DNA of 64,000 bases from contig VRVR01000017.1 in the NCBI GenBank assembly GCA_009859145.1, forward strand, positions 321,107 through 385,106, written 5' to 3'. The notes under the pieces were generated by a model. That model saw only the letters and a program-made list of their open reading frames with translations, was not told the DNA's origin and made no database searches. A program made the translations under genes and the position numbers. The DNA is from Andalucia godoyi And28. Lineage: Eukaryota > Protista > Jakobida. This document shows, in pieces, positions 6,372 to 48,634 of this stretch; the first letter of the stretch is position 1, and each line of letters opens with the position of its first letter.

Positions 6372-6555
6372 GCCTACACTGTACGCTAACCCACGGATAA
6401 TCATCGCTGATCACCCATAATCAATGTTGCAGCCCAACAACATGCATAATGCAACGCGGTGGCGTATTTATAAAACGCTTGTGCATGGCGCGTGCCAGTG
6501 GGTTTGCTTACGTGCGCTCTAGATTGCTTCAACATATCGCAATAGATGGCTGCGG
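6372..6555 (-). mobile_element. Internally deleted non-autonomous copy of the Fanzor-like relic at 48079-48634
   Basis: Colinear similarity to 48079-48634, including the block ggataatcatcgctgatcacccataatcaatg, with two internal deletions. Confidence 0.7.
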
Positions 6556-6709
6556 TTTCCGAATTTGCCTGAGCAAACGAAAGCCACCCCGCTTTGTTCT
6601 CCAGATTCATGAATGCTGATTTTCTTTGCATTTGCACTTGGATTTTCTTCTTCTTCTTCTTGTTTTTTTTTTGCGACTGATTTTTCATTAAAAATAGTGG
6701 ACCAGAGGC

Positions 6710-8272
6710 ATGGGAGAGGAGTCCTTTCGGTTGCTGTCGAATGATTCGTCTGGTCCAAGGGCTGTGGTTCCGCGGAGTCGAAGGTTTCTTGATTTCATGA
6801 ATGTGTTCAAAGCGTTTATTGGGGCGAACTATTTGACGACATCGTTTGCGTACTCGCAAGCTGGATATGCATTGGGGGCAGTTGGTATGGTTCTCGTTGC
6901 ATGGCTGACGGATTTCTGCTGTGCGCTGATTGTTGATTGCAAAAAGTTTGTATTGGACGATCTCGAGCGCAAACGCGCATATGAATCATCATCGGCATCA
7001 TCATCATCATCGTTGTCGTCGTCTGGTGCAGGTATCGCGGCATCTAGGGGGATGATGACGGTGATGGGTGATCTGGGCAAGTCCAGCCACCCGTCTTCGC
7101 GCAAGGATGCAACTGCTGCATCAACGACTGACAGCATAAACACCGAATACTCGGCTGTGGATGAACGGGAGGCACTGGAAATGACGTTCACGTACGAGGA
7201 TGCAGCACGTGCGGCGTACGGAAAATGGGGTGTGCGCGTCACAAAGTCCGTGTTGTTCTTCACACAGTTTGGATTCTGCGTTGGGTATTTTATCTTTTTG
7301 GGCCAGGTTCTTCATTCGCTGCTTCCAGACGTCAATATATTGTTATGTGTTGCAATGCCCTTTCCTTTCTGTCTTGGATTGTCGCTTGTGAAGGACATGA
7401 GGAAGTTCTCTGGAATTTCCATGGTTGCAAACATCTGCGTGTTTTCTGGTTATGTTGTGGTGCTGATCGTGTGCGGATACCACATCAACCAGCAGCTGCA
7501 CGGATCCGAGAGCAAGGCACACATTGTCCCTGCAAAATGGAGCACATTCCCGGTGTTTCTGGGAATGACTGCCGGCGCATACGAAGGCATTGGATGCATC
7601 ATCCCGATCGAGTCGTCCATGAGAGAGAACAGAGGCGCATTCCGAAGTTATCTGCACGGAGCTGTCGGGCTGATGACAGTGATCTTGGCCACTTGCGGAT
7701 TGCTCGGCTACGGCGCATACGGAGATGACACTGCCCAAATCATCATTCTCAACTTTGACAATTCCGCGGGCTACGTCAAGGCGTTACGTGCAACTCTGTG
7801 CATTTCGATTCTGGGCACGTTTCCTATGCAGTTGTTCCCCGCAGTGCAGATCGTCGAGCTGTTCATCAAGAAGTGGGCTTCGAGACGGCGACCGTCGTTG
7901 ATTGCAAAGATCTCGCACTCGTCATTTGTCGACGAGGACGAAGATGGCGACGATGATGATCGAAAGTACGCACTGATGGATCTGCCAATATGGCTGCAAA
8001 ACATCATCCGGGTCGTCATGGTCATTGTTGCGTGTGGACTCGGACTCGCATTCCGAGACTACTTTGCGTATTTTGCTGCCATTGTCGGTGCGATTGGTGC
8101 CTCCTCTCTGTCGTTCATCTTACCGTGTCTGTTCTACAACAAGCTCGTTCCGGAGTCGAAGAGAACTCGCGCTGCGGTCATTCGAAATTATGCTATTGCA
8201 GTAATCGGCATCGTCGGCGGACTCGGTGCCGTTGTCATTGCCCTGTCCGCGATTGTGGGTGCCGACTTATAG
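6710..8272 (+). CDS. Amino acid/auxin permease (AAAP/SLC36-like) transporter
   Basis: NVFKAFIGANYL, FFTQFGFCVGYFIF, GAYEGIGCIIPIE, FPMQLFPA, about 11 TM segments. Confidence 0.9.
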   Translation: MGEESFRLLSNDSSGPRAVVPRSRRFLDFMNVFKAFIGANYLTTSFAYSQAGYALGAVGMVLVAWLTDFCCALIVDCKKFVLDDLERKRAYESSSASSSSSLSSSGAGIAASRGMMTVMGDLGKSSHPSSRKDATAASTTDSINTEYSAVDEREALEMTFTYEDAARAAYGKWGVRVTKSVLFFTQFGFCVGYFIFLGQVLHSLLPDVNILLCVAMPFPFCLGLSLVKDMRKFSGISMVANICVFSGYVVVLIVCGYHINQQLHGSESKAHIVPAKWSTFPVFLGMTAGAYEGIGCIIPIESSMRENRGAFRSYLHGAVGLMTVILATCGLLGYGAYGDDTAQIIILNFDNSAGYVKALRATLCISILGTFPMQLFPAVQIVELFIKKWASRRRPSLIAKISHSSFVDEDEDGDDDDRKYALMDLPIWLQNIIRVVMVIVACGLGLAFRDYFAYFAAIVGAIGASSLSFILPCLFYNKLVPESKRTRAAVIRNYAIAVIGIVGGLGAVVIALSAIVGADL

Positions 8273-9022
8273 ACGATTTCCAAGAGGAGACAAGTAAACA
8301 AGAAGCGTGGAAAGCGGCACCAGAATGTTATCGATTTCTCGGGGCGAGCACGCTTCAACCACTGTGGCAAGCGCGCTTGCAACTACCAGGAAAGGCAGGC
8401 TGTGGAGTGCCGCGTCACCCCCAAACATGAACGCCACATTCCCTGCCGAGCCAAGCACTGAACCAAGGAGCATGAATGCAGAGCCTTCCAGCGTCTTGGT
8501 TTCCACAATGCGATATGGATGACGACCGAAGTAGCATCCTCCAACAGGTGCCAATCCATCTCCCCATGCAAGCACGCCCATAAGAACCGCACCAATGATT
8601 GTATCAAACGCGAACACCCCGACCGCGATCATGAGGAGCGTGAAATACAAGGGTCCTTTAAGCAGCTCAGCAGGATGGCCGGATCGACACACGCTGCGCA
8701 CCAATGGATCACAAAGGACTTTCACCGGAATTGATTCTCGTCTTGCCTGGTTCACATACGGCAGTCCTTTCATACAGAAAACCACAGAGAACATCGCAGG
8801 GACAACGATGTTGAAAATCCACGAAAAGCCATCATCTTTTGAAAAAAACGGGTGCGAAAGTACCCAGGTGCCAGCAAAGACATGCACCAACTTCCGGGAC
8901 AAAAACACGGGAATCACATGCTTTGCAACGAGAAAATCCAGACCTCCAAGAATCGCTTTGACATACGCTACCGTGCAAGCCGCAACAGCCACATTCAGCC
9001 AAAACGGAGACATCCCCTCCAT
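8267..9022 (-). CDS. Phytol/farnesol kinase-like (cytidylyltransferase/dolichol kinase family) membrane kinase
   Basis: SRKLVHVFAG, ELLKGPLYF, LAWGDGLAPVGG, KTLEGS, IDNILVP. Confidence 0.88.
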   Translation of the reverse strand: MEGMSPFWLNVAVAACTVAYVKAILGGLDFLVAKHVIPVFLSRKLVHVFAGTWVLSHPFFSKDDGFSWIFNIVVPAMFSVVFCMKGLPYVNQARRESIPVKVLCDPLVRSVCRSGHPAELLKGPLYFTLLMIAVGVFAFDTIIGAVLMGVLAWGDGLAPVGGCYFGRHPYRIVETKTLEGSAFMLLGSVLGSAGNVAFMFGGDAALHSLPFLVVASALATVVEACSPREIDNILVPLSTLLVYLSPLGNRL

Positions 9023-9289
9023 CGTCAATCGTCTCACGCAGTCTTTCTCAGTCTCGGTGCAATGGTTTTATTCCTCCGTGTTTGCGGCAGTGCTAAATAC
9101 AACGTTTCCCAGCATGAAAAAAATAATAATAAACGTCTCAAAGCAACTCGATGCAGGAGTCAATTGACACAAAGTACTCTGGTGCAAGTCTTCAAAAAAT
9201 AATAACAACAATCATAATAATCCAAAGTCTCCAACGTAAAAATAAAAATAAAATAAAAAAAGCTGAGGTCTCTAACCGCTCGCCAGAAT

Positions 9290-9840
9290 CATTATTGGTC
9301 ATCGGCTAAGCTGTCACATCCAAGCCACATGTTGTTATTTGGGACGAGCACCACCTCTTCAGTGCGGTCAAGGGGTCATCGCAACGAACATATTCCCGAA
9401 TCGATTCAACATTCAATAAATGAACGTTGAAGGAAGCCGGCGGCGTTGCACATCGCTGCACCCTCTTGCTCTCTGACTTGAAAGCGCATTCCGAACGCGC
9501 AATCGACCACATCTCCGTGATTTGATGATCATCCGCTTGCTCAGCAAGTTGCGACGAGAGGGGAATCAACGGGTTTCTTGGTTCTCGGTGTCTTCGGGCA
9601 TGGCCTCGGATTGAGTTTGTTGGGAAGATCCCTCTTTGGAGCCATGAGACGCTTTGTCTTTGTCTCGGATGAAAGATGCTGCGTGAGGGTTCGATAATAA
9701 AAGACAAAACAGAAAAGAATAATAGAAAGAAAAGAAACGTGGAGACTGAAGACATTCGAGACTTGACTACGGTAAGAGCATCGCGTCCCCATTGAGTTGG
9801 ATGAACACAAACTTCCGGTATGATGTTTTGTTTGCTTGAC
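9290..9840 (+). mobile_element. Dispersed repeat family A copy 1; decayed Fanzor/TnpB 3' half plus candidate omegaRNA
   Basis: Near-identical inverted copy at 21545-22052 and a deleted copy at 37810-38035. Frameshifted translation gives HVVIWDEH-TS-V(C)SR(C)H (RuvC-II/Zn) and CSLT(W>stop)KR(D>I)PNA-AI(N)..I (RuvC-III WNRDxNAAxNI-like). Confidence 0.65.
9570..9655 (+). ncRNA. Candidate Fanzor omegaRNA scaffold core (structured RNA)
   Basis: Stem GUGUCU-(UCGGG bulge)-CAUGGC...GGGA(AGA)UCCC...GCCAUG-AGACGC. Copy 3 has GCAUCU/AGAUGU (a G-C to A-U compensatory change) and a changed loop, ACA. Confidence 0.5.
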
Positions 9841-9972
9841 ATTCACGAACCAAATGATCAACCGTATCAGTACGTTTTGAATGCTGCATGCTTATTTCAG
9901 GTGGTGTGAGTGACTCGTAGGGTATACTGATTTATTGATTTAATTAATTAATAATATTATTTTTGCGGAAGA

Positions 9973-10569
9973 ATGTCGAATATAGCAAGTCTAGATCGGA
10001 CGATTAAAGATTTGTGGGCTCGTCGAGAGCGGGTTGCAAAAGAGGTTGTGCGAGATGAAGACGAGCTGTGTACGGTGAATCGGGAAATTGCACAGCTACG
10101 AGAACGCATGGATGCATTAAGAAAAAAGGCTGTTGTTCGAGAGGCGTTGCATTCGAAGATGGTGGATACACAGAAACGAAGCATTGCGGAATTCAAACAG
10201 ATCAACCAGGATTCAATGGAGCTCAAGCACAATGCGAATTTCAAGAGTGTGAAGTCCATGGGCTCGTTCATTGATTCGCAAAGGGATGGACGGGCAGTTG
10301 CACTGACGCCCAGGCTTACGTCCAGAGCAAAAGACCAGATGGGCTCTACGTTCAACATGACTGCATCACGGTCTGCCCAGGCCCATCGTCACGATGACCA
10401 CGATCTGTCGATGGCCGGCAGCGCGACTGTGAGTTCAGCATCGACGTCGCGGCTCAACGTTGGGTCTTCATCAAGAGCGGACTCGGCAAACTCTACTCCC
10501 CGCAACACCCATAAGACCAGTCAGGAACGGCTGTTTACCCCGCGGATGACGACCCCGCGGAAATCTTAA
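9973..10569 (-). CDS. SSNA1/DIP13/NA14-like coiled-coil protein with a disordered C-terminal extension
   Basis: IKDLWARRERVAKEVVRDEDELCTVNREIAQLRERM matches the heptad and residue spacing of SSNA1 ([36 protein letters not shown], recalled from memory). Confidence 0.6.
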
Positions 10570-10599
10570 TCCAGCCCTCGTTCTCCCTCTTCCTTTCTC

Positions 10600-10600
<1 letters not shown>

Positions 10601-10643
<43 letters not shown>
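10601..10643. repeat. (TCA)n microsatellite
   Basis: Direct reading. Confidence 0.95.
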
Positions 10644-10869
10644 ATTTGTAGAGTTTCTCCCTTGAATGTGTTTGCCTCTCCTCGTGTATTTATTTATTTA
10701 TTTTAATTTTGAATATTTTTGTTGCGCATGTACGTTATTGTTTTGCATTCGACTGTTGTTCAATAGAGTGGATATAAACAGTAGGATTTCAGACGTAGTT
10801 TACTTTCTCATCATCCTTCGCCTATATTGCATACTGAGCATCGCGAATCATTTGCTGACCATCCATACT

Positions 10870-11110
10870 CAGTCTTGCGCCGGAACCAAAGGTGAATTCA
10901 ATTCAGAAACGGGGAGGTCAGGCCCTCCCAGTACGAGGAAGCGTTCTTCCAATTGCTGCGGCGCGTACCATTTTTCCAATCTCGATGCAGCCGTGTGCCA
11001 GACATGACAGGCAAGGCAAACACAGCACGAGATCGCCAGAGGAACGCAGGATGGTGAGGCGACACATTTCTGATCTTCCCAAGGGTTCAAATTGCAGGGC
11101 ACTTTTTAGT
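10870..11110 (-). mobile_element. Probable decayed Fanzor2/TnpB mid-protein fragment
   Basis: Frames give EMCRLTILRSSGDLVLCLP (WED-like), GCIEIGK, and FLVLGGPDLPVSEL, in the expected order but with deletions. Confidence 0.4.
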
Positions 11111-11154
11111 CTTAAAGCCCTCCCTCTTGGCATACTGGAAAAAACGAAAGGCCC

Positions 11155-13890
11155 TCAGTCGTGAGAGGAGCGATGCCGCCGGCGATAGAACAACACATAG
11201 GCTGACGGGCTGTCCAAGTCTCGTTGATTGGCAGCGGCTACCCACGAGTCGTCAAACTTGTACCACGAAACATTCTCATCCTTTCCAGACAAGGCAGATG
11301 CGGTGTAGTGGCCCCCGGACAAGGAGCCGAAATGGTTCGAAGTTGCAAATAGATCATACACGGTGTCCGACGCATCCGTAACTCCGTGTGCAGCGCTGTC
11401 CAGATACGGAGAAACATCAAGTCCTTCGACTGGGAAATTAATGGTCGTTTCCAGTTTGCTCCGGAACAATGAGGAATACGAGAAGCGCTTCAGATGAATA
11501 ACCAGAACCTCGGGCAACCGAGCCAAGTCAAACTTCTTTGATGCATGAACATGGGCTTTGCACTTTGGACAATACCACTGATCGTTGTCACCGAGAATTT
11601 CCTGCTTGACAAACATATCCAGACAGCTAGCGATGCTGCAGCCCGACTCTCGATCTGCCTTGTATTTGTGGATTGATGGATCTTCCACGACCTTGTCCTC
11701 CAGTTTACGAATGTCAAAGTCGCGATCCTCGAAAATCACTTGGTATTTGTTCTTCTCCCCATACGTGTAAAGCGGGTCTTCTGGGACAATTGTAAATGGC
11801 GATTCGCCATCTGCTTGATCGGTAGCATGCTCCGTATCGTCTTCGCGTGTCTCCACCGCGGCAGACGGTTCCGCGTCCTGTGCATCAATGTCCATCTGCG
11901 ATGCTACGCGCTTTGACGACTGTGCAAGCTGCGTCGCGTCCAGGAAGAACCGCAGTACGCTTGTGATGTGCTCCGTTACTCGATCATCCTTGGGAATCAC
12001 AAACGGAAGCCCGAGCTCGTGAGAAACGTTGCGTGAGGATCCATACGACCGCTCTCGACGACGGATGGAAACAAAATAGTATCCATTCTCCGGGGCTTCT
12101 GAAAACACATAGACATTTTGGACTTCGCGAACTACATGGCTGGATTCTATGGTCTTCGAGGATTCTATGATTCGATGGATGCGATCATGCCACGATTCCG
12201 CGAGCACCATGAAATGATCCACTGGAATGTCAGCTTGAGTGCGAACCAAATCCAACAAAAATTTCACAGATCGTCCTCGAGTGATGCTGACAATCATGTC
12301 TCGCACGGACACGTCGGTGCCACTCATGTCCCATAAGCGAACGTGGACAGGAATTTGAGACTCATTCGGCAACGGCAACGAAAGGTACATGAAAGGATCC
12401 CATGTGACAGACACCAAGCTGCAACTTGGGCAAACCAGGGTAGACTTGAGCTGCCCTTGGAAGAGGTCCACGATGACCGAATCATTCCGCGCCTTGTGCA
12501 ATGCCCATGCTTCCTCTGCAGACTTGACATTTGAGAGATCTGTGTATGGTTTCTGTTTCACTCTGTTGAGGTCTTCATGAAGGCCGTCGAGTAGGAATGC
12601 AAGCAGCTCCTGGGAATCATGTTGAGCGTACCCGGAAAACTGCGGCGCAAACCGACCCAGAGTGAATTTGAATTCTCGTGGGGTAACAACGGAATTTGGA
12701 GACCCGGACCACACTTCCCGAATCAATCGACCGAATTGGTCCGCAATGTATCCACCGGAGCCAAGTGCATTATCTCGATTCACTTCCTTGGTCCACCTCT
12801 CGTAATCGCTAAAATACTCCTTCAGAGGGACGGTGTGCATCAAGCACTGCAGCCCCGAGTTCATGAAACAAGTATTTCCCAAATTCGAGAGACCACAAAG
12901 GCCGGCGCCGTCCATAGGAGCAGGCTTTGCTCTCTTTTCATCCAAATAGGAGTGCTGCCCTTCTCTGGCGTTGCCGTGTCCGCGGCTGAGCCACATACTG
13001 TTACAGCTGTTGCTGCTGTTTCCTCCACTTGACAAGGAGTTATGTGGGTACCCGCTCTTCGACGTGGATGTCGAGCGACCTCCTGCTGGGTAAGTAGAAC
13101 CGTGATCGAACTCGTCCGAGCTTGAATTCGAATGCATCGACGCCACGGAGGATGAAGGAGATGGGATGAGCGAGTCCTCATCCGCAGCTGTGGCGCCCTC
13201 CGATACTCCAGTTCCATTCAAGACGGCAAAGTCAGATCCGCGCTCCAACAACGCACCGTCGAACAATTCGAGCTCTTCCAAAGACTTCTGGTCGTCGAGA
13301 ATAGCAACCTTGCCCGCAACCGACAGCCGCACGTACATCGGAATCCTGCAAAAGGACTTTATCTGACGAAGCGGCCATTTCTTCGACGCAAACAGCACGT
13401 GTTTTTCATCCTGCATCGACGCTGTCGAACTGGCAGACAACTGAAGCGTAATTTTCCAAGGATGCACCTCGACAGTGAGGTTTCCAGAGCCCGTTGTCGT
13501 GTCCTTCACAACCGGTCTTGGTACATGTGGTCCACCTCCGCACTTTTTCATGATCCAATCGTACTGCTCTTCATTGACAAGAACATAATCAAATGGCTCC
13601 ACCGCAGCAGCGCTCAATCGACACGGTCTTTCAGCCAAACTCTCGTCGACCGACACAATTCGAGAGTTGTCCACAGCTTCAAAGCTGTCCCATGACTCAT
13701 CCTGGAACCGATGCAGCCACTCCGTGCTCACGACATACATGATCTCGCCTTCCCGCATCGGCCGGTGCAGCCTGTCAAACTCGCTAGTACGAGCCGACAG
13801 CGGTAGAGACACGCAACTTCCAGTGTGCAACGATCCCTCTGTATACAGCGAATCCGGACATACCACATGCACTTCCGCCGTAACCGTCAT
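11155..13890 (-). CDS. Ubiquitin-specific protease, USP4/11/15 type (DUSP-UBL-split catalytic domain)
   Basis: GLSNLGNTCFMNSGLQCL, QHDSQELLAFLLDGLHEDLNR, WYCPKCK, NHFGSLSGGHYTA, SAYVLFYRRR. Confidence 0.95.
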   Translation of the reverse strand: MTVTAEVHVVCPDSLYTEGSLHTGSCVSLPLSARTSEFDRLHRPMREGEIMYVVSTEWLHRFQDESWDSFEAVDNSRIVSVDESLAERPCRLSAAAVEPFDYVLVNEEQYDWIMKKCGGGPHVPRPVVKDTTTGSGNLTVEVHPWKITLQLSASSTASMQDEKHVLFASKKWPLRQIKSFCRIPMYVRLSVAGKVAILDDQKSLEELELFDGALLERGSDFAVLNGTGVSEGATAADEDSLIPSPSSSVASMHSNSSSDEFDHGSTYPAGGRSTSTSKSGYPHNSLSSGGNSSNSCNSMWLSRGHGNAREGQHSYLDEKRAKPAPMDGAGLCGLSNLGNTCFMNSGLQCLMHTVPLKEYFSDYERWTKEVNRDNALGSGGYIADQFGRLIREVWSGSPNSVVTPREFKFTLGRFAPQFSGYAQHDSQELLAFLLDGLHEDLNRVKQKPYTDLSNVKSAEEAWALHKARNDSVIVDLFQGQLKSTLVCPSCSLVSVTWDPFMYLSLPLPNESQIPVHVRLWDMSGTDVSVRDMIVSITRGRSVKFLLDLVRTQADIPVDHFMVLAESWHDRIHRIIESSKTIESSHVVREVQNVYVFSEAPENGYYFVSIRRRERSYGSSRNVSHELGLPFVIPKDDRVTEHITSVLRFFLDATQLAQSSKRVASQMDIDAQDAEPSAAVETREDDTEHATDQADGESPFTIVPEDPLYTYGEKNKYQVIFEDRDFDIRKLEDKVVEDPSIHKYKADRESGCSIASCLDMFVKQEILGDNDQWYCPKCKAHVHASKKFDLARLPEVLVIHLKRFSYSSLFRSKLETTINFPVEGLDVSPYLDSAAHGVTDASDTVYDLFATSNHFGSLSGGHYTASALSGKDENVSWYKFDDSWVAAANQRDLDSPSAYVLFYRRRHRSSHD

Positions 13891-14227
13891 TGCTTCTTGC
13901 TCAACCCAGATATATACGAGAAAAAAAGACGGGCCGAAATGAAAAGAAGAAAAAACGTCTACTGCCTCGTCAACGCGGATAAGGAGACAAACGCAAAGAG
14001 AACCCAAGGAGAAACCCCCTCCCCACCTTACATTGTACCGTAATCGTAGTTCGCGTGTTCGCGGAGAGCTTAAATCGGTTCAAGTGCTGTGTCTCAAGTT
14101 GATACTGCGAAAAACACGCATCCGCGAAAAAGCCGTTCTCATGTTTTTTAACTGCTCACGCTGCTTACAAGACCTACTGGCATGTTCTCGCATCGATTGA
14201 AAACATCCGACCCGGGAAAAGAAGAGA

Positions 14228-15815: not shown

Positions 15816-15845
15816 ATTCTTCGCGTTTTACCTTTTTTAAAAAAG

Positions 15846-21333: not shown

Positions 21334-21359
21334 TATGTTTTGCGATTTCTTCTTTTTCT

Positions 21360-21362
<3 letters not shown>

Positions 21363-21400
<38 letters not shown>
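21363..21400. repeat. (TC)n microsatellite
   Basis: Direct reading. Confidence 0.95.
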
Positions 21401-21403
<3 letters not shown>

Positions 21404-21544
21404 TCTTCAAGATAAGTCCAGAAAACAAAGAAAACAAACAGAGAAGACAAGGTTGTGGGGGAGTAAAAGTTGCCGTGTTGCGTGTTTTGCATGTATTTTC
21501 GAGGAAAGAAAAGAACGGTTGAACATCAAGCAACAGAATTTTCC

Positions 21545-22052
21545 TACCGTAGTCAAGTCTCGAATGTCTTCAGTCTCCACGTTTCTTTTCTTTCTATTAT
21601 TCTTTTCTGTTTTGTCTTTTATTATCGAACCCTCACGCAGCGTCTTTCATCCGAGACAAAGACAAAGCGTCTCATGGCTCCAAAGAGGGATCTTCCCAAC
21701 AAACTCAATCCGGGGCCATGCCCGAAGACACCGAGAACCAAGAAACCCGTTGATTCCCCTCTCGTCGCAACGTGCTGAGCAAGCTGATGATCATCAAATC
21801 ACGGAGATGTGGTCGATTGCGCGTTCGGAATGCGCTTTCAAGTCAGAGAGCAAGAGGGTGCAGCGATGTGCAACGCCGCCGGCTTCCTTCAACGTTCATT
21901 TATTGAATGTTGAATCGATTGGGGAATATGTTGGTTGCGATGACCCCTTGACCGCACTGAAGAGGTGGTGCTCGTCCCACTTAAAATAAAAGTAAAACAC
22001 ATGCGGCTTTGGATCCGTCTTGCGCGACAGCGTAGCCAATGATTAATAAGTA
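21545..22052 (-). mobile_element. Repeat family A copy 2 (inverted, near-identical to copy 1)
   Basis: Reverse complement aligns to about 9290-9775 with only scattered substitutions in the core. Homology stops after ...gactacggta. Confidence 0.85.
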
Positions 22053-22300
22053 TTCATGTCCGGTTTTCTCGATTGGGTACTGATTGTACGGCCGTTTGGC
22101 AGAATTCTTGGGGCTTCCTGACTCCCGCCATCTGGCGCCAACTACGAAATCCAGAAATCGCCCAATTCGACACTTCTTCTCCTTTCGAAGCTGTGATTTG
22201 TGTTCTGTTTTTTAATTTAATTTTTAATTTTTTCTTTTTCTCGTTTTTCTTTTTTCCTTTCGTTTTTCATGACTTTCGTGATTCATCGGCTTGCGAGAGA

Positions 22301-37515: not shown

Positions 37516-37809
37516 CCCGCAAGACTACTTTTTTGATGATCAGCACCAACTTGGCGTTTCGTTTCGTTTCGTTTCGTTTCCCGTACTCCCCGCATCTTCT
37601 CAATATTTATTAACGTCTAGTTTAGTTTGATGTTTGTTGTGACATATCCAAGAGCAAACTTCCACCAGTAAATTTTCTCTGTGTACATGCGTGTTCGTCA
37701 GGTAATCAGCCTCATGACCTGCAGCCAGCAACGGCCATGAAGTACCATTATTGCATCACAGAAGAAATGCTTGACCGTTTTGTGGATCAGCATTGAAAAC
37801 CAAAAAACA

Positions 37810-38035
37810 AACAACGTCATACCGGAAGTTTGTTTATCTGAACCCAAAACATCTCATGGCCCCGTAGAGGGATGTTCCCAATAAACTCAAACCCGGCCAT
37901 GCCCGAAGATGCCGAGAACCAAGAAACTCGTGGTTGCGATGACCCTTTGATGCACGGCAGTCTGCATGGAAGAGTGGGTGCTCGTCCCAAATTGAATCTG
38001 TCTTCGGTGACAGTTCAGCCCGATGATGATCCATA
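37810..38035 (-). mobile_element. Repeat family A copy 3 (diverged, internally deleted)
   Basis: Retains IWDEH, the structured core and aaacttccggtatga, but lacks about 200 nt containing the RuvC-III-like segment. Confidence 0.75.
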
Positions 38036-38216
38036 ATGAATCATGTTTTGACAACCTGTTGTAACATTAGAATTCCGATGCCTGCTTCAAACCGGTGGGG
38101 AATTCCAGTTTCACGCCGCCTGACGCCCCAAAGAAAACAAAAACACAAGCGAAAACCGTGCACTGATAAACAGCTCGGAAGTGGTTTTGTGTTTGCTTGC
38201 TTGTTTGCGTGTGTCT

Positions 38217-38280
38217 TGTGGTTGCGTGTGGTTGCGTGTGGTTGCGTGTGGTTGCGTGTGGTTGCGTGTGGTTGCGTGCG
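38217..38280. repeat. (GTTGCGTGTG)x~6 minisatellite
   Basis: Direct reading. Confidence 0.95.
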
Positions 38281-38325
38281 CGAGTTGCTTGCGTTCGGGA
38301 ATGGATGGGAAGAGAAGTGGAGTGA

Positions 38326-38595
38326 ATGGGGTTCGTAATGTCGAGTACGTTTCGTAGAGTTCAAGTGATTGTGAATCACCTTTCCTCTCGGCCGTCACAT
38401 GGAGACGCAGGGTCGCCGAGCGGCCTCGTAGCAGATGCGAAACATGCTCAATGGGAACAGCGATTTCATGCGCTCCAAACACCCGATGGACGGATTGAGG
38501 ATCAGGATGGGGACAGTGCAGATGGGTTTTTCGTAGCCTCTCGCGACGGGTCGCTCCGTGCTGTCCCCATTGTGCGAGCTCGAAAACCAAATTGA
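38326..38595 (+). CDS. Possible small protein with a PTS2-like motif; strand assignment ambiguous
   Basis: RVQVIVNHL fits the PTS2 consensus. An equally open antisense frame exists. Confidence 0.3.
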   Translation: MGFVMSSTFRRVQVIVNHLSSRPSHGDAGSPSGLVADAKHAQWEQRFHALQTPDGRIEDQDGDSADGFFVASRDGSLRAVPIVRARKPN

Positions 38596-40093: not shown

Positions 40094-40127
40094 CAAGACC
40101 TAACCCTAGACCTAGGGTTACGTCTTG
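40094..40127. promoter_or_regulatory. Palindromic telo-box-like element upstream of RPL5
   Basis: CAAGAC-C-TAACCCTAG-AC-CTAGGGTTA-C-GTCTTG, an inverted repeat of telomere-type motifs about 330 nt upstream of the RPL5 ATG. Confidence 0.5.
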
Positions 40128-40296
40128 TTAAGCTAAATAACTACAGCAGGCAGAGCTGACAAAACACAGTGGCATACGAAATCTATGCTTGGGGCGGGGG
40201 ACGGTGGGTCCGTTGAAGACCAGCCACGCCAGTTTTGAAACGGCAATAACTTTTAAAAAGGCATAATAGGATAGAATATAGAGCTACGTGTGTACT

Positions 40297-41083: not shown

Positions 41084-41115
<32 letters not shown>

Positions 41116-42672
41116 CAATACAACATCTTCGTCGTCGTCATCTGTTTTTCTGCGTCGCTTGCGTGGCGCTTCTTGTACATCAGAGTCACTCTGCGCATCA
41201 TCCTCGACAATGTGTTGTCTCTTCTTTTTCTTCTCCGCGCCACCGTCTCTCTCAGCATCCACATCCCAGTCGACTTCTTCATCCAATTGACGCCTGCGGC
41301 TGTTGCGACCTCCTTTCGGCTTTGTGCCTGAACCAAGCTCCACTGCTTCCAGCGCCTTTTGTTGTTCCAACAGCCGTTTCTTCCCTTCTTCTCCTTCGGT
41401 ATTGAGAATCGCGTCTTCAATGAGCCTGTCCAGCTCCTCTTCCTGTCCATAGAATCTGCTAGTGCCTCTGGACCTGGAAGTTCGACGTTCGGTTCGCTCC
41501 ACCTCTTCCAATTTTGTTCGGATGATGTCTTCCCTAGTTTGCTGAACGAAGATCTCACGCAGGCGAGTACTACGTCGATTCCCTTCTTTCTCATCTCTTT
41601 CAATCTCTTCCTGTACAAGTCTGTTGATTTCTTCCTCGTCCAGTTGAATTTCGGCTTTCTTCTCCTTCTCCTTCTTCTTCGATTCCTCCTGTTCTTCGGC
41701 CTCCTCGTCATCCTCTTCAGCACCATCCGGGCCCTTGTCGCCACCTGAGCCGTTTGCACTCCGCAGATTTCGTAATTCCCGAGTTCCGTGGAGCTTCTTC
41801 TTCTCGGCCTTTTCCTCTTTCCTGACGGCCTCTTCTGCCTTTTGTACATACTCCGATTCTTCTAAGCAAAACTCCCGAAGTTGTCTGCACTTTGCATCCT
41901 TCACGGACAAAGAAGACGCAAACGCCTTCATTTCCTCCCACGTGGAACAGACTACTTCCCACACTTGCGTCTTTATGCGCTCGCGATACATTCTACAGGC
42001 GTCCGGATCATCTCGTTGCGAGAACACGTAATATTCATATCCAAGATACCGGAAGGACGGTTTTGGCCTCAAAATATCAACATCAAACAACCGGCCCCGC
42101 ATGCATCTTTCCACATCAGGATTGTCTTCCATGGCATGCCACACAATGTTGACGAGAATTTCCACGCGCTTGGGGGTTGGAGCAAGCCACACAGACGAAT
42201 GCTCCAGCTGAAACTCCTCTGGAAACTCCGTCAGAAACTTCCGGAGAACAGGGGCGTAAGTACTTCGAGTCACTTTCGGATACTTGCGGTTCGCCTGCCG
42301 CAACAGTGTAAGAAGCGCGACAATTATATTCTCGATGAGAGCCATGGGCTTTCCCGACCGGCTGTCAAGACATTTTTCCAAATCAACTGCCGAGAAAACA
42401 GGCATCTTGTCCAGGTCGCAATATACGCGAAGAAACCGGCACATTGCACAGAGCACAGCAGTCGAAAACAACTGGCATGCCGGTGTCGACGCTTCCACCT
42501 TGTCTTCCACCACAGCTTCTTCGGAGCCGCCTTCTTGATCTGACACGGATCCAGCATCTGAAGTTGCATCATTATCCGATTCCACGCCGTCTTCCTGTAC
42601 TGCTGCTTTTGGCTCACGTCCCTGTTCAACCTCGCGGCGCTTCGAGAGTCCTGTATCGTCCTCCGAAGTCAT
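40297..42672 (-). CDS. DDT-WHIM-WSD chromatin-remodelling (ISWI partner, RSF1/CECR2-like) protein
   Basis: AMCRFLRVYCDLDKMPVFSAVDLEKCL (DDT-like), KRVEILVNIVWHA (WHIM1-like), YYVF..CRMYRE..WEVVCSTWEEM (WSD-like), acidic and Q-rich tails. Confidence 0.7.
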
Positions 42673-42861
42673 TCTCCTTTGGCCACCTCTGTACCTGCAA
42701 TCTCTGCTGTCCCCACCACGAACTGCGAATGTGTGGGAAATATACCAACTTTCTTCTAATGCCTTGAATCAATTCACCAGTATCTGCAGCCCAGAATAAA
42801 GCATGGAATGCTGTACCAAAACAACAGAAGATAAACATAAAAGAAGGAGGGAGAAAAAACA

Positions 42862-42874
42862 GAAAGAAAGAGAC

Positions 42875-42958
<84 letters not shown>
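42862..42958. repeat. (GA)n microsatellite with GACA interruptions
   Basis: Direct reading. Confidence 0.95.
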
Positions 42959-42962
<4 letters not shown>

Positions 42963-43384
42963 GGGAAAACGGATTTTTCCGAAAACCCAGCACTCCTGCG
43001 GTGTAGCCTCGTGGGATTTCATCGTGTGAAAAAAAGAAAAAAAAAATGTCATTGTGCTCGAAGTCCATGAAGCATCAATTGATTCCGCCAAAAACGCTCC
43101 TTCCAAAAATAATATCATAATGAAATAAAAGGAAAGGAAAAGAAAAAAAAAAAGAGTCGAAAAATCCGAAAAGAAATGGCTGGTGTTTTGGGCGGGACCG
43201 CTTCTCTCCTTCTCAGCATTCGGATCCTGATACTGGACCTCATTATCGTCTTCTTCATACATATCTGATGGAGAAATGGAAAACACTCGCATAATCGATG
43301 AACTGCGAACAGAAGATTGAATACGATTTGCTATTTGGATCCATTTAAGTGCTTTCAGTTTTTGCCGTTCTTGGAGTTGTTTTC

Positions 43385-44527
43385 ATGAGCGAGTTGGAGG
43401 CTTCCCCGCGGGATGCGTCAGTTGACCTGGTCGAATGTGCGAGGATTCTGGTCATGCTGCATGAGCTGCGTAACGCCTCGGATTTGCTGCAGGTCCTGTC
43501 TAGGCGTGAGAGACTTGTTCATTTGTATGGAAAGCATGTCCAAAAGATTAACGCGATCGTCACAAAGAACACGCTTGTGTTTTTCCAACGGAAAACTGCG
43601 CGCTGCGATGAGTTGGTCGAAAAGATGAGGCAGAATGTCGCTTTATCCGGCAGGTTTTCTGATCCAGATGTTTTGGCAGTGTTTCAGGAGATCGGTCTGA
43701 TCAATGAGCACATGTTGCGATACGCAGACCTTGATACACGTCGCAAGGTGATGAGCGAATTGATTGCGTGGGAGGATGTTCCGCCCGCTGTTCCATTGTT
43801 TTTTCCGGTGATGTCGCTTCGTGAACGTCCATACGGATTCCAGCTGCCTTCGCTGCTTGAGCCGTCATCGTCACTGTCTTCTTCTGGAAAGAGGGAATTG
43901 CAAGATCGCCTGTACCGTTTGTCGCATGATTTGCATGTCAAGCCGTTCTCCATATCGTCTTCCAATTTGGGTGACGTTCTGGATCCACTCTCTCTCACCA
44001 TGCTATCTTCCAAGCTTCATTCCACGCGGCAGTCTCGTCCAACGTCTTTGGAAAAAGAAATACGGTTCCTATCCGCGCTGGAACCCACCTCTTCTTCTGT
44101 GCAGCGCCTGCTGGACAGACGCTGCGGCATGCAGGACTCGAATTCGGAAATCCTTCGAGCCATTGCCCATTCGTTTTCCGTCGAATATGGAGCGTGCGTC
44201 GATCGGTTGATTCAGTTTTTCGATTTTACGTTTTTTGAGTTTTGGAAGAAGAATGAATCTGCTGACCTTGCATCGGCGCTGCAGAGTTATTTGGATCCTG
44301 GTGTTGCAGCGGCCTCTCCCACTCTTTTCCTGTTTCTCTTTCGCACATTCGTTCGACAATATCTTCAAACAGCGCATTCCAGATTCGAACATCGACTTCA
44401 GCATCGACTAGCATCAGATCTACATGTTTTGCACCAGTGGATTCAGAAGAAACTGCCTGCAAGTCTTGCATCCGCAATCCAACGACAGTGCATGCTTGCT
44501 ACCTGGGAATCTATGCTGAAAACTTGA
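43385..44527 (+). CDS. Hypothetical helical protein
   Basis: 380-codon ORF. No family recognised. Confidence 0.7.
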   Translation: MSELEASPRDASVDLVECARILVMLHELRNASDLLQVLSRRERLVHLYGKHVQKINAIVTKNTLVFFQRKTARCDELVEKMRQNVALSGRFSDPDVLAVFQEIGLINEHMLRYADLDTRRKVMSELIAWEDVPPAVPLFFPVMSLRERPYGFQLPSLLEPSSSLSSSGKRELQDRLYRLSHDLHVKPFSISSSNLGDVLDPLSLTMLSSKLHSTRQSRPTSLEKEIRFLSALEPTSSSVQRLLDRRCGMQDSNSEILRAIAHSFSVEYGACVDRLIQFFDFTFFEFWKKNESADLASALQSYLDPGVAAASPTLFLFLFRTFVRQYLQTAHSRFEHRLQHRLASDLHVLHQWIQKKLPASLASAIQRQCMLATWESMLKT

Positions 44528-44542
44528 GTGCATGACGCGGCA

Positions 44543-45097
44543 TCAATTGCCGTTGTCTCCACGAACACGCAGGACTGCGGCGCCGAGTCCCTCGCTCTCC
44601 ACCATTATGACGAGCTCGCTTCGGATATTCAGTAAGCGCTTGACTGCCTGAGACGCCTTCTGGTCGGACGCCGTCAGCTTATCCAGAAACTGCCCACACG
44701 AAGCACGAATTTTGGTTTCAAGTGCCGGTCGTTCATCTGCCAATGGATGTGGTTCCACAAGCTGCGCTCCGATTGCCATCCAATCCGATCCGTTCCAGCC
44801 GTCGGGGTCGATTGCAAGAAGTTCCGTCAGTAAACATTCTGCCCTGTGCGCAGTGTCTTCCTTTGCAGAAAGAGAAAGCGCATAGGCCATGCCTTGCATC
44901 ATCCCAATAGCATACCCCGCAGCAGAACCATACGAGAAGCCTTGGTCAAACCCGTGCTGAACACCAGCATCTTTGCTCGAAACGCTCTCCTCACGAAACG
45001 CCTGCTTGTGCAAGGTCGCAGAGTGGGATTCGAGCTCCCTCTCGTGGCCCATATCACTCTGGTCATTCGTATCTAGCCAATCAGAGTGATCCGCCAT
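44543..45097 (-). CDS. YAE1: YAE1-like protein (Yae1_N, ABCE1 Fe-S maturation)
   Basis: AFREES...VQHGFDQGFSYGSAAGYAIGMMQG deca-GX3-like motif. Confidence 0.6.
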   Translation of the reverse strand: MADHSDWLDTNDQSDMGHERELESHSATLHKQAFREESVSSKDAGVQHGFDQGFSYGSAAGYAIGMMQGMAYALSLSAKEDTAHRAECLLTELLAIDPDGWNGSDWMAIGAQLVEPHPLADERPALETKIRASCGQFLDKLTASDQKASQAVKRLLNIRSELVIMVESEGLGAAVLRVRGDNGN

Positions 45098-45503
45098 GGC
45101 TGCCGTTTCGATCGTCGCCAAGCGCTTTGAACACCCTTTTCGCGGTCACGTTCTGGCTCCGACACGCAGATTTAACACTCCTCTCGATTGATTCACATTG
45201 TTTTTTCTTTTTGCTGGAAAAAAAAAAAAAAAGTCTGTGTCTCAATTGAAGCCAGACAGAAGGAAAGCCCGAGGCAAAACTCCTATTTTTGCCCGAAACT
45301 GGCCTCTCTCCATTTCTGTGTAAATCGTAAACGCACCCCCCCGCAGTTCTTTTACTCCTTTGTTCGGTGCAGTCAGTTTCAATTAATGGTCTAGGTGCAT
45401 GTTAGTGAAGGAAGGAAATCTGCCTTTTTGTACACTTACTGCTATATATCCGTTTGAAATAGTGGGGTGATAAAAAAAGAAGAAGAAGAAACAGTACTGA
45501 TTC

Positions 45504-47726
45504 ATGTCTTCGTATCCTGGAGTCGAGCTGTCTCTGATCCGCGGATCGGGAGCTGCTCTTAATGCCGCAAAGTACCCGGAAGCCGACCGGATTATCACAT
45601 ATCTCTGGCAGTACAGCGAGCAGTCTATGCATGTGATTGCGGCGTTGGAGCGCCAAGTTCAAGACGGGAGAACCAAGCTGTTGGAACTACAGGCAAGCAA
45701 GCGGGTGTCTTCGTTTTCGTCAATTGAAGAGCAACAGGAGTTTGAGTTTCTCAAGTTGCAGATTAACATCGCAGAAAAGAGGATTCTGTTCGAGAGACTG
45801 GTTCGCGAAATATGCGAGGAGACGACGACCGACATTTGCCAGCACCCAGATGACGATTCCTACAAGATCTCTGTTGCCGACTACGTAGGAGTGTTTGAAA
45901 GGGTAGTGAGGACCGATTCGAGATCCGTCCCGATTCTAGCGGTGCTGTTGTCGCTCCAAACATCACTGTATGCCACTATGCGGTACGTGAAACACGTGCA
46001 CGAAACCAAGATGACATCCGGTCGTGGAATCGCGCAAATATCGGCAGAGGTCAGCAAGTTTTTGGAAGCAGACGATCGTCCGTCTGCAGTAAAGCCGACG
46101 CTAACGGAGACGCAGACACAGCACATCGACGCGTTTTTATCCAGGTGCGCTGCGGAGTCGCAGTTCATTATGAACGCCAAGCAGTTTGTGGAAGAGTTGG
46201 TCACTCTGGAGGGTGAGCACTCGAATCCGGATCCAGAGCTGATTGCAGTTGTCGAAGATGCTGTGTTTCCGAAGTACTATACTGAACTAATGCAGCATTG
46301 TGCATTGGAATGCAAGGAAGAAGATGCACAGTTCCAGGAGCGTTGTCAGCAGTTTTCATCGATCTCACAGAAATCCTTGTACATTAATGACGATTTTATC
46401 TCCTTAGAGTCGTTCCCGTATATGCAGGCGGTCGCCTATCTGCGGACCGTGTATTTTGGCGTGTCTCCCACACGGAAGCTGAGGACGTTTTTGCATGCCG
46501 CGCAGGCTGTCTATCGACACATGGAGGAAATGCGGGCACGAACAAGCGGGAAAGTCCAGGAAATTGCTGCAGACGAATTCTTACCTGTTCTCATTTTCAC
46601 CGTCTTGAAAGCGAATGTTCGAGACATTTGCTCGCAGCTCCAGTTTGTCAAGACGTATGCAAGCGACCGATTTATGAACGGTGAAATGGGATACTACTTG
46701 TCATCGGTCGAATTAGCTGTTGAGTACATCAAGAACTTGTCGTCGGAAAAGCTGTGTCCCAGCAAATCGCCGTCTCTCCTCCGGAAGTTTGCCTTTCCCG
46801 AACGGCAGAAGTACTTGAGATGGGCAGCTACGGACAGCCACGTGTCGTTGCTGTCCCCGGACGTTGTGCTCAAAGGATATCAGCTGTTTGCTATCCAGGA
46901 CTGGATTCTTTCGCCTGCTCGCTTAGTGAGCACTGTTCTCAAGCGAACGGGTTGTTCCTCGGACATCGTCCATCTGTGCTCCGTTCGAATCAACGAAAAG
47001 GCTACGGAGATGCAGTTGGACTTTCTAACCAAGACCTTCCTGCAATTTCCTTTGCACTCAGGGTTTACCTCTGAGGACACTGTACACGGAACCGTCGTCA
47101 CGTTTGAATCGGATGAATCGCATCCGGCCCTTGCTGGGCTGCATTTTATTCCGGTGCGATCGGGCGATTATGACTCGGAAGTTGTGTCGATTGTCGATGA
47201 CTTGATGTTGCACCGCGTTACGGATGCGGATCGTTTGATTCAGTTGCTCGGAGTCCAAACTCTTCGTGAAGTTGTGACGTATGTGCAGGAGTGTTTGATC
47301 TACTTTGACTTGATTATGACCGTCCTTCCATCGAGAGAAGGTGTCCTTGACGACGTCGTTGTATTTGGCATCACACAATTTCAAAAATCGAGGGATTTGA
47401 AGGGGTGCGCTCCCGGCCACTTGGATGTCGCAACCTTGGCTGCAATTCGCTCTCGTGCCGAGGAGTGCTCGTGGTCGCTTAAGAGTATCAACTATCTGGA
47501 TTCCACTTTCAATCCGAAAACTCCTGCCGTCTTTGCTGCACTGACTGCTGCAACAAAGCAGTTTCAGAAGCAGTGCGGGCTGTTTCCCGATGGAAGAATG
47601 GGGACCAAAACACTTATGCTTCTCAACAAAATTGTCCAAGGAGACACCAGTGCCGAGGAGGAGCGTCATCACGCTGCCCAGTTTCTGCGGAAGGTTTCCG
47701 GAAATGAAGATTCGACATCTGCATGA
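45504..47726 (+). CDS. VPS9-domain Rab5 GEF fused to an STB6-like domain and a C-terminal peptidoglycan-binding-like helix
   Basis: IAADEFLPVLIFTVL and GEMGYYLSSVELAVEYI (VPS9); FPERQKYL..KGYQLFAIQDW..TG (STB6_N-like); FQKQCGLFPDGRMGTKT. Confidence 0.75.
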   Translation: MSSYPGVELSLIRGSGAALNAAKYPEADRIITYLWQYSEQSMHVIAALERQVQDGRTKLLELQASKRVSSFSSIEEQQEFEFLKLQINIAEKRILFERLVREICEETTTDICQHPDDDSYKISVADYVGVFERVVRTDSRSVPILAVLLSLQTSLYATMRYVKHVHETKMTSGRGIAQISAEVSKFLEADDRPSAVKPTLTETQTQHIDAFLSRCAAESQFIMNAKQFVEELVTLEGEHSNPDPELIAVVEDAVFPKYYTELMQHCALECKEEDAQFQERCQQFSSISQKSLYINDDFISLESFPYMQAVAYLRTVYFGVSPTRKLRTFLHAAQAVYRHMEEMRARTSGKVQEIAADEFLPVLIFTVLKANVRDICSQLQFVKTYASDRFMNGEMGYYLSSVELAVEYIKNLSSEKLCPSKSPSLLRKFAFPERQKYLRWAATDSHVSLLSPDVVLKGYQLFAIQDWILSPARLVSTVLKRTGCSSDIVHLCSVRINEKATEMQLDFLTKTFLQFPLHSGFTSEDTVHGTVVTFESDESHPALAGLHFIPVRSGDYDSEVVSIVDDLMLHRVTDADRLIQLLGVQTLREVVTYVQECLIYFDLIMTVLPSREGVLDDVVVFGITQFQKSRDLKGCAPGHLDVATLAAIRSRAEECSWSLKSINYLDSTFNPKTPAVFAALTAATKQFQKQCGLFPDGRMGTKTLMLLNKIVQGDTSAEEERHHAAQFLRKVSGNEDSTSA

Positions 47727-47800
47727 GCTGGGGCGTCCCGTTTTCTTTTCATCTCTTCCCCATCCAGTTAAAAACTAAATAAAAACGATATCTTCTCCTC

Positions 47801-48075
47801 AGGGTTACTGTCAGTTTCGCCAGCGACCGCTGGACATGGAAAGACAGAATGGAACCGCTGAGGTATTCCGATGTTCAGCGTGTGCAGCGATGATCGATCG
47901 AGACTGGGGAAATGGATCGCGCAACATCAACTTTGAAAGAACACGGCGAGCGCACGCACTTGTGAGCTTGGGACCTTGCCAATCTCTTCACAATTGATTC
48001 ATAGAATTCATTGTGACGCAAAACATTCCAATAGTACCAATTAGACCCGATTAGGTGTTAATGCAGTATATCGCA
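47801..48075 (+). mobile_element. Decayed Fanzor2/TnpB C-terminus (RuvC-II, Zn ribbon, RuvC-III) and downstream candidate omegaRNA
   Basis: 47863-47904 reads VFRCSACAAMIDRD. After a 7-nt G-run frameshift, 47912-47929 reads NGSRNI. Upstream RVTVSFAS-DR(C)G resembles VxExxTSxxCxxCG. A hairpin lies at 47988-48016. Confidence 0.8.
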
Positions 48076-48078
48076 GAT

Positions 48079-48634
48079 GCGCCTACATTGTACACTAACC
48101 ATGGATAATCATCGCTGATCACCCATAATCAATGCTGCAACCCAACAACATGCATATCATGATTGTGAAAGGGGGTAGGCCCCAACACGCCCCTCGGCAT
48201 GCGAGACGTTCTTAAGATAGATGTAGATGTTGCTTTCGGTGCTGCACTGTCCGTTGTGGCGGGCAACGAAGCAGGTGGTGATGGCGCGTTCGACGTCTGC
48301 GAGGCAGTGCACGCGATGGGAGCCGGCGTGGATGTTGCGAATCGTTCCGGCGGCGGTGGAGATGTCACGACTCGTGCGCAGCGTTGCGGGCGTGACGTAC
48401 ATGGTGCGTTGCACGGACAATAAAAATAAAGAAATGAAATGAGCGACGCTGTGCGAGAATGCAACGCGGCGGCGTGTTTATAGGGATTTTATGGTCAAAA
48501 ATGGGGGCGAATCGAATCGGGCATCGTGTGGACGGAGTTGCTTACGATAACAAACGCATGCGCATGGCGCGTGGCAGTGTTCTTGGTTACGTGCGCTTTC
48601 GATTGCTTCATCATACCGCAGTAAGTGGCAGCGG
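48079..48634 (-). mobile_element. Second decayed Fanzor2-like element, convergent with the first
   Basis: Minus frames give MMKQSKAHVTKNTATR; VTPA..TSR..TAAGTIRNIHAGSHRVHC...CFVARHNG..SNI..YLKN; then LGPTP (48185-48171) and a hairpin at 48166-48145. Confidence 0.65.

Follow-up and report, generated by a model that had tools for sequence, protein, structure and literature searches.

Evidence for decayed IS607-type Fanzor2 remnants in intergenic DNA of the jakobid Andalucia godoyi

Do the intergenic spacers near the end of a scaffold of the jakobid Andalucia godoyi hold the remains of Fanzor elements and, if so, of which kind and in what number? The question concerns the terminal 64 kb of the 385-kb scaffold VRVR01000017.1 (GCA_009859145.1, 321107-385106), hereafter the window, where ordinary eukaryotic housekeeping genes are annotated on both strands (Pfam). 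Exact-sequence look-up of ten long open reading frames recovered eight of them in EukProt, two of these in NCBI as well, and one of the eight fixes the coordinates of the window on the scaffold. The draft genome of this organism is ~20 Mb, intron-poor and characterized by short intergenic spacers, and some subtelomeric “transposon/viral-like” scaffolds were omitted from its assembly (PMC7050145). A preliminary description, made from the letters of the sequence, had proposed that the intergenic DNA is littered with relics of at least two lineages: a Fanzor1-like family A at 9.3, 21.5 and 37.8 kb and a Fanzor2/IS607-TnpB-like group at 47.8, 48.1 and 6.4 kb. Our findings support a narrower picture. 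The window very probably contains four decayed, 5'-truncated IS607-type Fanzor2 remnants, referred to here as R1, R2, B1 and R3, and family A is a separate repeat without a demonstrable Fanzor link. A search of the literature and of supplements found no paper connecting Fanzor with Andalucia or with jakobids.

In an active element, the omegaRNA, also termed reRNA, starts at a hairpin that forms the end of the nuclease gene. From there the RNA scaffold continues as far as the right end, and the guide comes from the flanking DNA. What survives in the relics is the last 60-190 codons of the open reading frame (ORF) together with the RNA-coding right end, in differing states of decay. R1 has a readable peptide and a degraded RNA part, R2 a destroyed ORF and a full-length scaffold, R3 is degraded in both, and B1 is without stem-loop 1. 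Their coordinates are collected in Table 1.

The 47.8-kb segment, R1, does derive from a Fanzor2-type C-terminus. A set of 120 Fanzor2/IS607-TnpB proteins was gathered with the N. lovaniensis Fanzor2 as query (supplement of Saito et al. 2023) and compared with the window by tblastn. For 100 of the 120, the best high-scoring segment pair (HSP) lies at 47803-48048 (+), always through the C-terminal end of the protein, with E-values down to 1.8e-5. The N. lovaniensis protein itself aligns through residues 459-483 of 495, at 58% identity over 26 residues, and one tblastn alignment places “GLSEVFRCPSCGSIFDRD-INGARNI” opposite “GTAEVFRCSACAAMIDRDWGNGSRNI”. The family signature that joins the zinc finger to RuvC-III, “F.C..C....DRD.NG(A/S)RNI”, is present and reads “EVFRCSACAAMIDRDWGNGSRNI”, with one extra residue after “RD”. 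Similarly, R1 is the sole match of a 526-position Fanzor2 hidden Markov model (HMM) among 2,259 stop-to-stop six-frame fragments searched with filters off (E 5.2e-5, with all others at E >= 1), although it covers just model positions ~455-526. A frameshift-tolerant profile-to-DNA alignment gives R1 40.3 bits, against 14.9 +/- 2.3 in shuffles (z ~11), and no other tile of the window scores higher. In Pfam, the best family for the 72-residue fragment at 47779-47994 is PF07282 (Cas12f1-like TNB / OrfB zinc ribbon), at E 0.006 and 17 bits, under the gathering cut-off.

R1 begins 77 nt past the stop codon (47726) of a VPS9-domain gene on the same strand. No upstream homology to Fanzor2 was found beside it in any frame by HMM, tblastn or frameshift-tolerant scan. 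Because the VPS9-domain gene ends only 77 nt before R1, nothing of the element survives upstream.

The RNA-coding part was characterized from external loci of the same family. The 120 proteins have C-terminal tails that end in “VG(A/T)YPL”, “LGPTPF” or “LGLTPS”, and the peptides “VGAYPL” and “LGPTPF” correspond to the hairpin GTTGGGGCCTACCCCC read in two alternative frames. This hairpin stands by the stop codon in three unrelated external loci (L002, L004 and L005, the last a classic IS607 carrying a Resolvase TnpA) and in the window module at 48191-48080 (-). A terminal “TTTAAT.GTAGGCG” is found 45-78 nt beyond it in these three external loci; the window module has this motif too. The locus pairs L002/L003 and L007/L056 each represent the same element with unlike flanks, and because both pairs diverge immediately after GTAGG[CT]G, this motif is the right-end terminus. 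It may be added that, in one IS607-TnpB/Fanzor2 clade, a variable C-terminal protein tail is encoded by a single conserved omegaRNA hairpin in differing frames.

From five external sequences, and no window sequence, we derived an nhmmer profile and a first covariance model of 100 positions and 23 base pairs; a second covariance model was built from 22 external sequences. The first model locates the module directly 3' of a TnpB/Fanzor2 ORF in 17 loci not used as seeds, and ~23 of the ~160 external loci fetched (L002-L164) match the covariance model.

When these external models are applied to the window, they converge on R2. The nhmmer profile has a single match, at 48186-48081 (-) with E 1.7e-5. 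The first covariance model, run on both strands with filters off, likewise has a single match, at 48191-48080 (-), which spans model positions 1-100 of 100 with 34.1 bits and E 5e-6; the second again retrieves 48191-48080 alone (31.5 bits, E 5e-5). The stop codon of R2 (TGA, 48159-48157) lies inside this module, a layout shared with the external loci. Minus-strand positions 48192-48157 translate to “GRVGAYPLSQS*”, whereas a shift to the adjacent frame gives “VLGPTPFHN”, and the tail peptide of R2 matches the conserved nucleotide hairpin common to L002, L004 and L005. The “LGPTP” cue on which the preliminary description had drawn is therefore a real feature of the family, namely the ORF-tail hairpin in one of its two frames.

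The right end of R2 is also marked by its partner in a second repeat, family B, of which R2 and B1 are the two copies. The homology between R2 and B1 ceases at ...GTAGGCGC (48079 and 6370, respectively), which matches the family right-end terminus within 1 nt, so that the repeat boundary is the family right end on the minus strand. The module also agrees with the pseudoknot described for IS607 reRNAs, which have three stem-loops and pair the apical loop of stem-loop 1 with guide-adjacent nucleotides (PMC10711439): the GCCUAC loop of the tail hairpin pairs with GUAGGC beside the guide position. In the other direction, the DNA repeat shared by R2 and B1 reaches ~48760, and R2 lies ~460 nt past the stop codon (49217) of an AAA-ATPase gene on the same strand.

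B1 beats chance solely through its homology to R2. It matches 48079-48634 at 82-92% identity in three blocks (blastn and local alignment), and nhmmer recovers it at 6699-6448 and 6448-6370. R2 holds stretches of 302 nt (48157-48458) and 69 nt (48483-48551) that are absent from B1, which is therefore left without the ORF tail and stem-loop 1, and the pseudoknot partner is gone. No covariance-model match to B1 was obtained, as expected with stem-loop 1 deleted. B1 is a deletion derivative of an R2-type element. It lies antisense in the promoter or 5' region of an amino-acid transporter gene (ATG at 6710).

A fourth relic, R3, had not been listed by coordinate in the preliminary description, which had allowed for up to four weaker segments. 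It was found with a profile of B1 and R2, at 11013-10819 (-) and E 3.4e-5 (nhmmer). R3 shares the odd extra residue of R1 after “RDW” (“RDW.NG”), and in an independent alignment five of the six pairs of its terminal, pseudoknot helix are kept. It lies ~115 nt past the stop codon (11155) of a ubiquitin-hydrolase gene on the same strand. A profile iterated from R2, R3 and B1 yields one further match, R1 itself, at 47894-48020 (E 0.02). This match, along with an omegaRNA-like motif resemblance spotted by eye, suggests that the tail of R1 at 47962-48057 may be omegaRNA-like. If so, R1 (+) and R2 (-) would have their right ends facing each other across a gap of ~22 nt (48058-48079), about one guide length, an arrangement that may be a coincidence or may reflect the insertion of one element beside the end of the other. 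Beyond R1, R2, B1 and R3, whole-window HMM, covariance-model, frameshift-tolerant and nhmmer scans revealed no further relics; the weaker segments announced earlier had come without coordinates.

Table 1. Positions of the Fanzor2-type relics and of the family A copies in the window. Descending coordinates follow the minus strand.
Element	Feature	Positions	Strand	Remarks
R1	ORF remnant	47803..48054	+	5'-truncated Fanzor2/IS607-TnpB, ~last 80 codons
R1	First zinc-finger half, degenerate, “GYCQFR”	47803-47823	+	
R1	Second CxxC, “FRCSAC”	47866-47883	+	
R1	RuvC-III “DRD”	47896-47904	+	Followed by “WG-NGSRNI” to 47928
R1	Tail “SLGPCQS”	47965-47985	+	
R1	In-frame stop	47995-47997	+	Homology runs on to “IRPD*” at 48040-48054
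R1	Candidate omegaRNA-like tail, degenerate	47962..48057	+	“CTTGGGACCTTGCCAA” at 47967-47982 and “...GATTAGGTG” at 48049-48057; overlaps the end of the ORF remnant
R2	omegaRNA (reRNA) scaffold and right end, full-length	48080..48191	-	nhmmer, two covariance models
R2	Stem-loop 1, GTTGGGGCCTACCCCC	48186-48171	-	Loop GCCUAC
R2	3' terminus, “GGTTAGTGTACAATGTAGGCGC”	48100-48079	-	GUAGGC complementary to loop GCCUAC; pseudoknot/closing helix, intact
R2	Inner long helix	~48140-48095	-	
R2	Element boundary	48079/48080	-	
R2	Decayed ORF remnant	48157..48750	-	Frameshifted, ~last 190 codons
R2	“LFLLAAATYCGMMKQSKAHVTKNTA”	48647-48573	-	Resembles RuvC-II region “ILLPSFETQ.M....KI.SKTA”
R2	“NIYIYLKNVSHAEGRVGAYPLSQS*” (“NIYIYLKNV...VGAYPL” tail)	48231-48157	-	Resembles “(R)NILLRYL......VGAYPL”
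B1	“Ghost” copy of R2-type element	6370..6699	-	blastn, local alignment, nhmmer
B1	Distal omegaRNA part and right end, “GGGTTAGCGTACAGTGTAGGCGC”	6392-6370	-	
B1	RuvC-II-region remnant, “AAIYCDMLKQSRAHVSKPTG”	6553-6494	-	
R3	ORF C-terminus and divergent omegaRNA/right end	10819..11040	-	nhmmer
R3	“CLPCLSC”	11013-11002	-	Frameshift after
R3	“GTRLHRDWKNGTRRSNWKNASSYWEGLTSPFLN*” (“HRDWKNGTRRS...YWEGLTSPFLN*”)	10999-10898	-	
R3	Stem-loop 1, GGGAGGGCCTGACCTCCCC	10929-10911	-	
R3	Terminus, “GCAATATAGGCG” (“...ATAGGCG”)	10830-10819	-	
A1	Family A copy	9286..9833	+	Head-to-head intergenic (promoter) region
A2	Family A copy	21542..22055	-	Head-to-head intergenic region; inverted, 11.7 kb from A1
A3	Short family A copy	37805..38042	-	Without equivalents of A1 9386-9568 and ~9657-9806

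Several results weigh against this assignment of the four relics. For R1, the covariance model gives the RNA part a non-significant 2.5 bits (E 0.63, 171 nt searched), and thermodynamic z-scores place the folding of the R1 3' region and of B1 no better than shuffles. The traces of the R2 ORF are collinear yet individually non-significant (z 1.3-3.0). R3 is reached by neither the external HMM nor the external covariance model, and its ORF remnant, taken by itself, falls short of significance in the protein tests; because the external models miss it, its assignment rests on likeness to R2 and R1. Covariation in the module is high (91% standard-pair cells, whereas shuffles reach 58% and slid controls ~38%), with compensatory changes at all 23 pairs among 23 sequences, but these counts come from an alignment that was itself fitted to the model; the terminal (outer) helix is upheld in an independent MAFFT alignment.

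Other signals from the same searches were examined and set aside. A tblastn cluster of Fanzor2 C-termini at 52858-53007 (+), drawing on 37 proteins with a best E-value of 0.02, is a chance product of an alternative frame within a real F5/8-type-C (discoidin) domain gene. Similarly, the peptide string “RWRCHDSCAA/RCGRDVHGA” at 48348-48408 (+) has a z-score of 1.8, runs antisense to R2 and is attributed to chance.

Compared with Fanzor2 and IS607 TnpB systems (for instance, NlovFz2, or bacterial IS607 with its serine-recombinase TnpA), the relics share the C-terminal signature “F.C..C-x4-DRD-x-NG(A/S)RNI”, the ORF-tail hairpin GTTGGGGCCTACCCCC, and a scaffold that runs from the ORF 3' end to the terminus ...TAAT.GTAGGCG with three helices, including the pairing between the loop of stem-loop 1 and the guide-adjacent positions. 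They also share the lack of visible terminal inverted repeats and target-site duplications, neither of which was found for the family A or family B repeats. Unlike those systems, all of the window relics are 5'-truncated and have no intact ORF, RuvC-I, RuvC-II, WED, REC, left end or TnpA, and R1 and R3 have one extra residue between RD and NG. No intact ORF of ~400-650 residues with the RuvC-I D, RuvC-II E and RuvC-III D was found, and frameshifts and stops interrupt R2 and R3. The scanned intergenic fragments likewise contained no serine-recombinase TnpA, Resolvase or other transposase domain, and no left end was encountered.

The part of the earlier proposal that concerned the 47.8, 48.1 and 6.4 kb group as Fanzor2/IS607-TnpB-derived is thus borne out, by tblastn and HMM on R1, by nhmmer and the covariance models on R2, and by homology for B1. 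The segments it named are real and non-random, and self-comparison assigns those at 9.3, 21.5 and 37.8 kb to family A and those at 6.4 and 48.1-48.6 kb (B1 and R2) to family B. The motifs it quoted each occur once, “VVIWDE” at 9331-9348 (+), “LGPTP” at 48171-48185 (-) and the DRD motif at 47896-47928 (+), although the last reads DRD-WG-NGSRNI and is one residue longer than stated. The motifs had also been said to stand in the correct order, which needs amending: LGPTP lies on the strand opposite to the DRD motif and belongs to R2, not to R1. As to the profile searches, R1 emerges in the Fanzor2 HMM, tblastn and frameshift-tolerant alignments, but PF07282 stays below its cut-off, Fanzor1 profiles are null on family A, and the window relics include no intact ORF with the D-E-D residues.

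Family A is a genuine dispersed repeat that is probably non-coding and that we leave unclassified. A1 and A2 are 98% identical across 438 bp. When the translations of the long ORF common to both are read side by side, most differences turn out to change the amino acid, and for this reason family A is probably non-coding. Codon-usage scoring of small ORFs gave no discrimination. A short tandem duplication is present beside A3, at 38181-38340, and translates as “RVVACGCVWLRVVACGCV” or, from the opposite strand, as “TQPHATTRNHTQPHATTRNH”.

The Fanzor1-like character attributed to family A is not supported: every TnpB/Fanzor test of the family stayed at chance level. Two Fanzor1 HMMs, one from 56 chytrid proteins and one from 124 full-length representatives obtained by a HMMER scan of 1.84 billion proteins, gave no signal on either strand of A1, A2 or A3 (z -0.8 to 1.7), and the best-scoring fragment in the window (E 0.44) is located elsewhere. 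Searches of family A by tblastn with Fanzor1 proteins yielded E 1.3 or worse, and frameshift-tolerant alignment was also negative. Nor was profile similarity to the Fanzor1 RuvC/zinc-finger region (“viviGDW ... TS..C..C ... C....C ... WNRD.NA..N”) found in family A. In comparison with Fanzor1 proteins such as SpuFz1, just short motif letters are alike (“VVIWDE”, “SSACSASC”), and their register and spacing do not fit. Family A also gave no signal with the Fanzor2 HMM, tblastn or frameshift-tolerant alignment. Its single fragments have no Pfam TnpB match; the Pfam copy used gives no match even to intact SpuFz1, so that Pfam negatives on Fanzor1 carry no weight. Family A has no match in Rfam, the RNA folding of its cores is unremarkable, and exact-pattern scans of metagenome and viral contigs found no match to the repeat cores. 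One consideration counts against keeping family A apart: the protein tests have low power on decayed relics, as they missed R2 and R3 too, and their negatives do not prove family A unrelated.

An alternative reading, which we regard as doubtful, takes family A for what is left of the 5' part, comprising the left end and N-terminal coding sequence, of the same Fanzor2 family after decay. On the plus strand, A1 shows ordered motifs resembling eukaryote-type Fanzor2 N-termini (“SKP..IWDEH” for “SKPFWNEY”, “RVSWFSVS” for “NSWFSV” and “ETEDIRD” for “ETPYDVRD”), and a chain alignment ranks A1 20th of 362 real-sequence tiles, ~3 standard deviations above shuffles. The motifs, however, were noticed post hoc, and a position-specific scoring matrix of conserved columns, a test of low power that misses R2 and R3, ranks A1 324th of 362. 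Moreover, tblastn returned no HSP at E <= 10 on the motifs, the spacing from SWF to “L..W” is one residue against ~75 in the family, A3 fails to score, and no family A copy adjoins a family B copy.

Returning to the four Fanzor2-type remnants, none retains RuvC-I, RuvC-II, WED or REC, so none can encode a nuclease, and all are most likely inert. At most, a Fanzor2 encoded elsewhere in the genome, if there is one, could bind the R2 scaffold in trans. No intact A. godoyi Fanzor2 and no close annotated relative were found among the annotated proteins reachable, and candidate matches obtained from NCBI came from other assemblies.

Saito et al. 2023 (PMC10432273, Supplementary Data 2) document “ghost” omegaRNA loci that lack a nuclease gene in Spizellomyces punctatus. 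The window relics are alike in that omegaRNA-coding ends persist without a functional nuclease gene, most clearly in B1 and effectively in R2 as well. They are unlike in that the Spizellomyces loci are of Fanzor1 type, with inverted repeats and both ends, whereas the relics in the window are of IS607/Fanzor2 type, have right ends only and mostly damaged scaffolds.

The relics R1, R2 and R3 all lie 77-460 nt past a host stop codon (VPS9-domain, AAA-ATPase and ubiquitin-hydrolase genes) on the strand of that gene, and probably in or beside 3' untranslated regions (UTRs); the agreement in strand, three of three, has p ~0.125 and is not significant.

A second alternative holds that the modules are not inert, and that R2, perhaps with R3, might be transcribed, either to be taken up in trans by an intact Fanzor2 or as exapted 3'-end or regulatory RNA elements. 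The R2 scaffold is full-length and compatible with the structure, the three relics stand just past host stop codons on the same strand, and the Spizellomyces ghosts provide a precedent for omegaRNA loci without a nuclease gene. Yet the reachable proteins include no intact Fanzor2 from this genome, the same-strand placement is of the weight just given, and three of the four scaffolds are broken, so we judge this alternative improbable. A more specific version would have A. godoyi hold an intact Fanzor2, for example on the omitted subtelomeric scaffolds, with the ghost modules, chiefly R2, transcribed in host 3' UTRs and either loaded in trans with guides matching host intergenic DNA or exapted as 3'-end elements. 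The chances of this version are a shade slimmer still; if it were true, jakobids would have their first functional OMEGA-type system.

The full model of the preliminary description, with two Fanzor lineages, large bursts and selective retention of omegaRNA ends, is very improbable as a whole, despite its sound elements: a Fanzor2 group does exist, family A is indeed repeated in several copies, two of them a very recent pair, and every relic is a 3'-end piece. The second lineage is not supported, as family A gives no Fanzor1 signal in two HMMs, tblastn or frameshift-tolerant alignment. At the level of motifs, “VVIWDE” is out of the register of “VViGDW”, “SSACSASC” is spaced C-x3-C, and there is no second zinc-finger pair. 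Nor can a littered genome or large bursts be read from just four fragments within 64 kb at the end of a scaffold. That ORF 3' ends and RNA right ends do survive is correct, but preferential keeping of omegaRNA ends, although it fits the anatomy, is not established: the scaffold is intact in only one of the four relics, and plain 5' truncation would account for the pattern just as well.

Finally, the view that the motifs are chance picks from six-frame translations, with nothing derived from TnpB or Fanzor, is already refuted for R1 and R2 and has a negligible probability overall: concatenated six-frame searches against Pfam and a 5.8-billion-protein set were empty, phmmer against the PDB yielded only a match of the R1 peptide to succinate dehydrogenase that was judged chance, and Pfam noise reaches similar E-values on hydrophobic frames, but external protein models single out 47.8 kb and RNA models 48.1 kb over the whole window on both strands, and the repeat boundary falls within 1 nt of the family right-end terminus. 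The empty concatenated searches were an artefact of query length: joining six frames into one long pseudo-protein masked a true HMMER match, and the R1 fragment alone matches PF07282.

Among the remaining features of the window are long (GA)n/(CT)n microsatellites at 63929-64000, 42863-42966, 21351-21402 and 57248-57337; the window and the scaffold both terminate in one. No tRNAs were found in the window, and an Rfam search of it returned nothing at gathering or relaxed thresholds.

Hosts of Fanzor2/IS607-type elements already recorded include amoebae, Naegleria, fungi, molluscs and giant viruses. The relics described here widen this recorded host range to Jakobida and show past invasion by such elements even of a very compact, gene-dense genome. 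They represent an already-known kind of element in a novel host lineage, present as dead fragments, and indicate neither a new mechanism nor a large reservoir. The ORF-tail hairpin combined with the right-end motif offers a practical search handle, which proved more sensitive here than protein searches on decayed copies.

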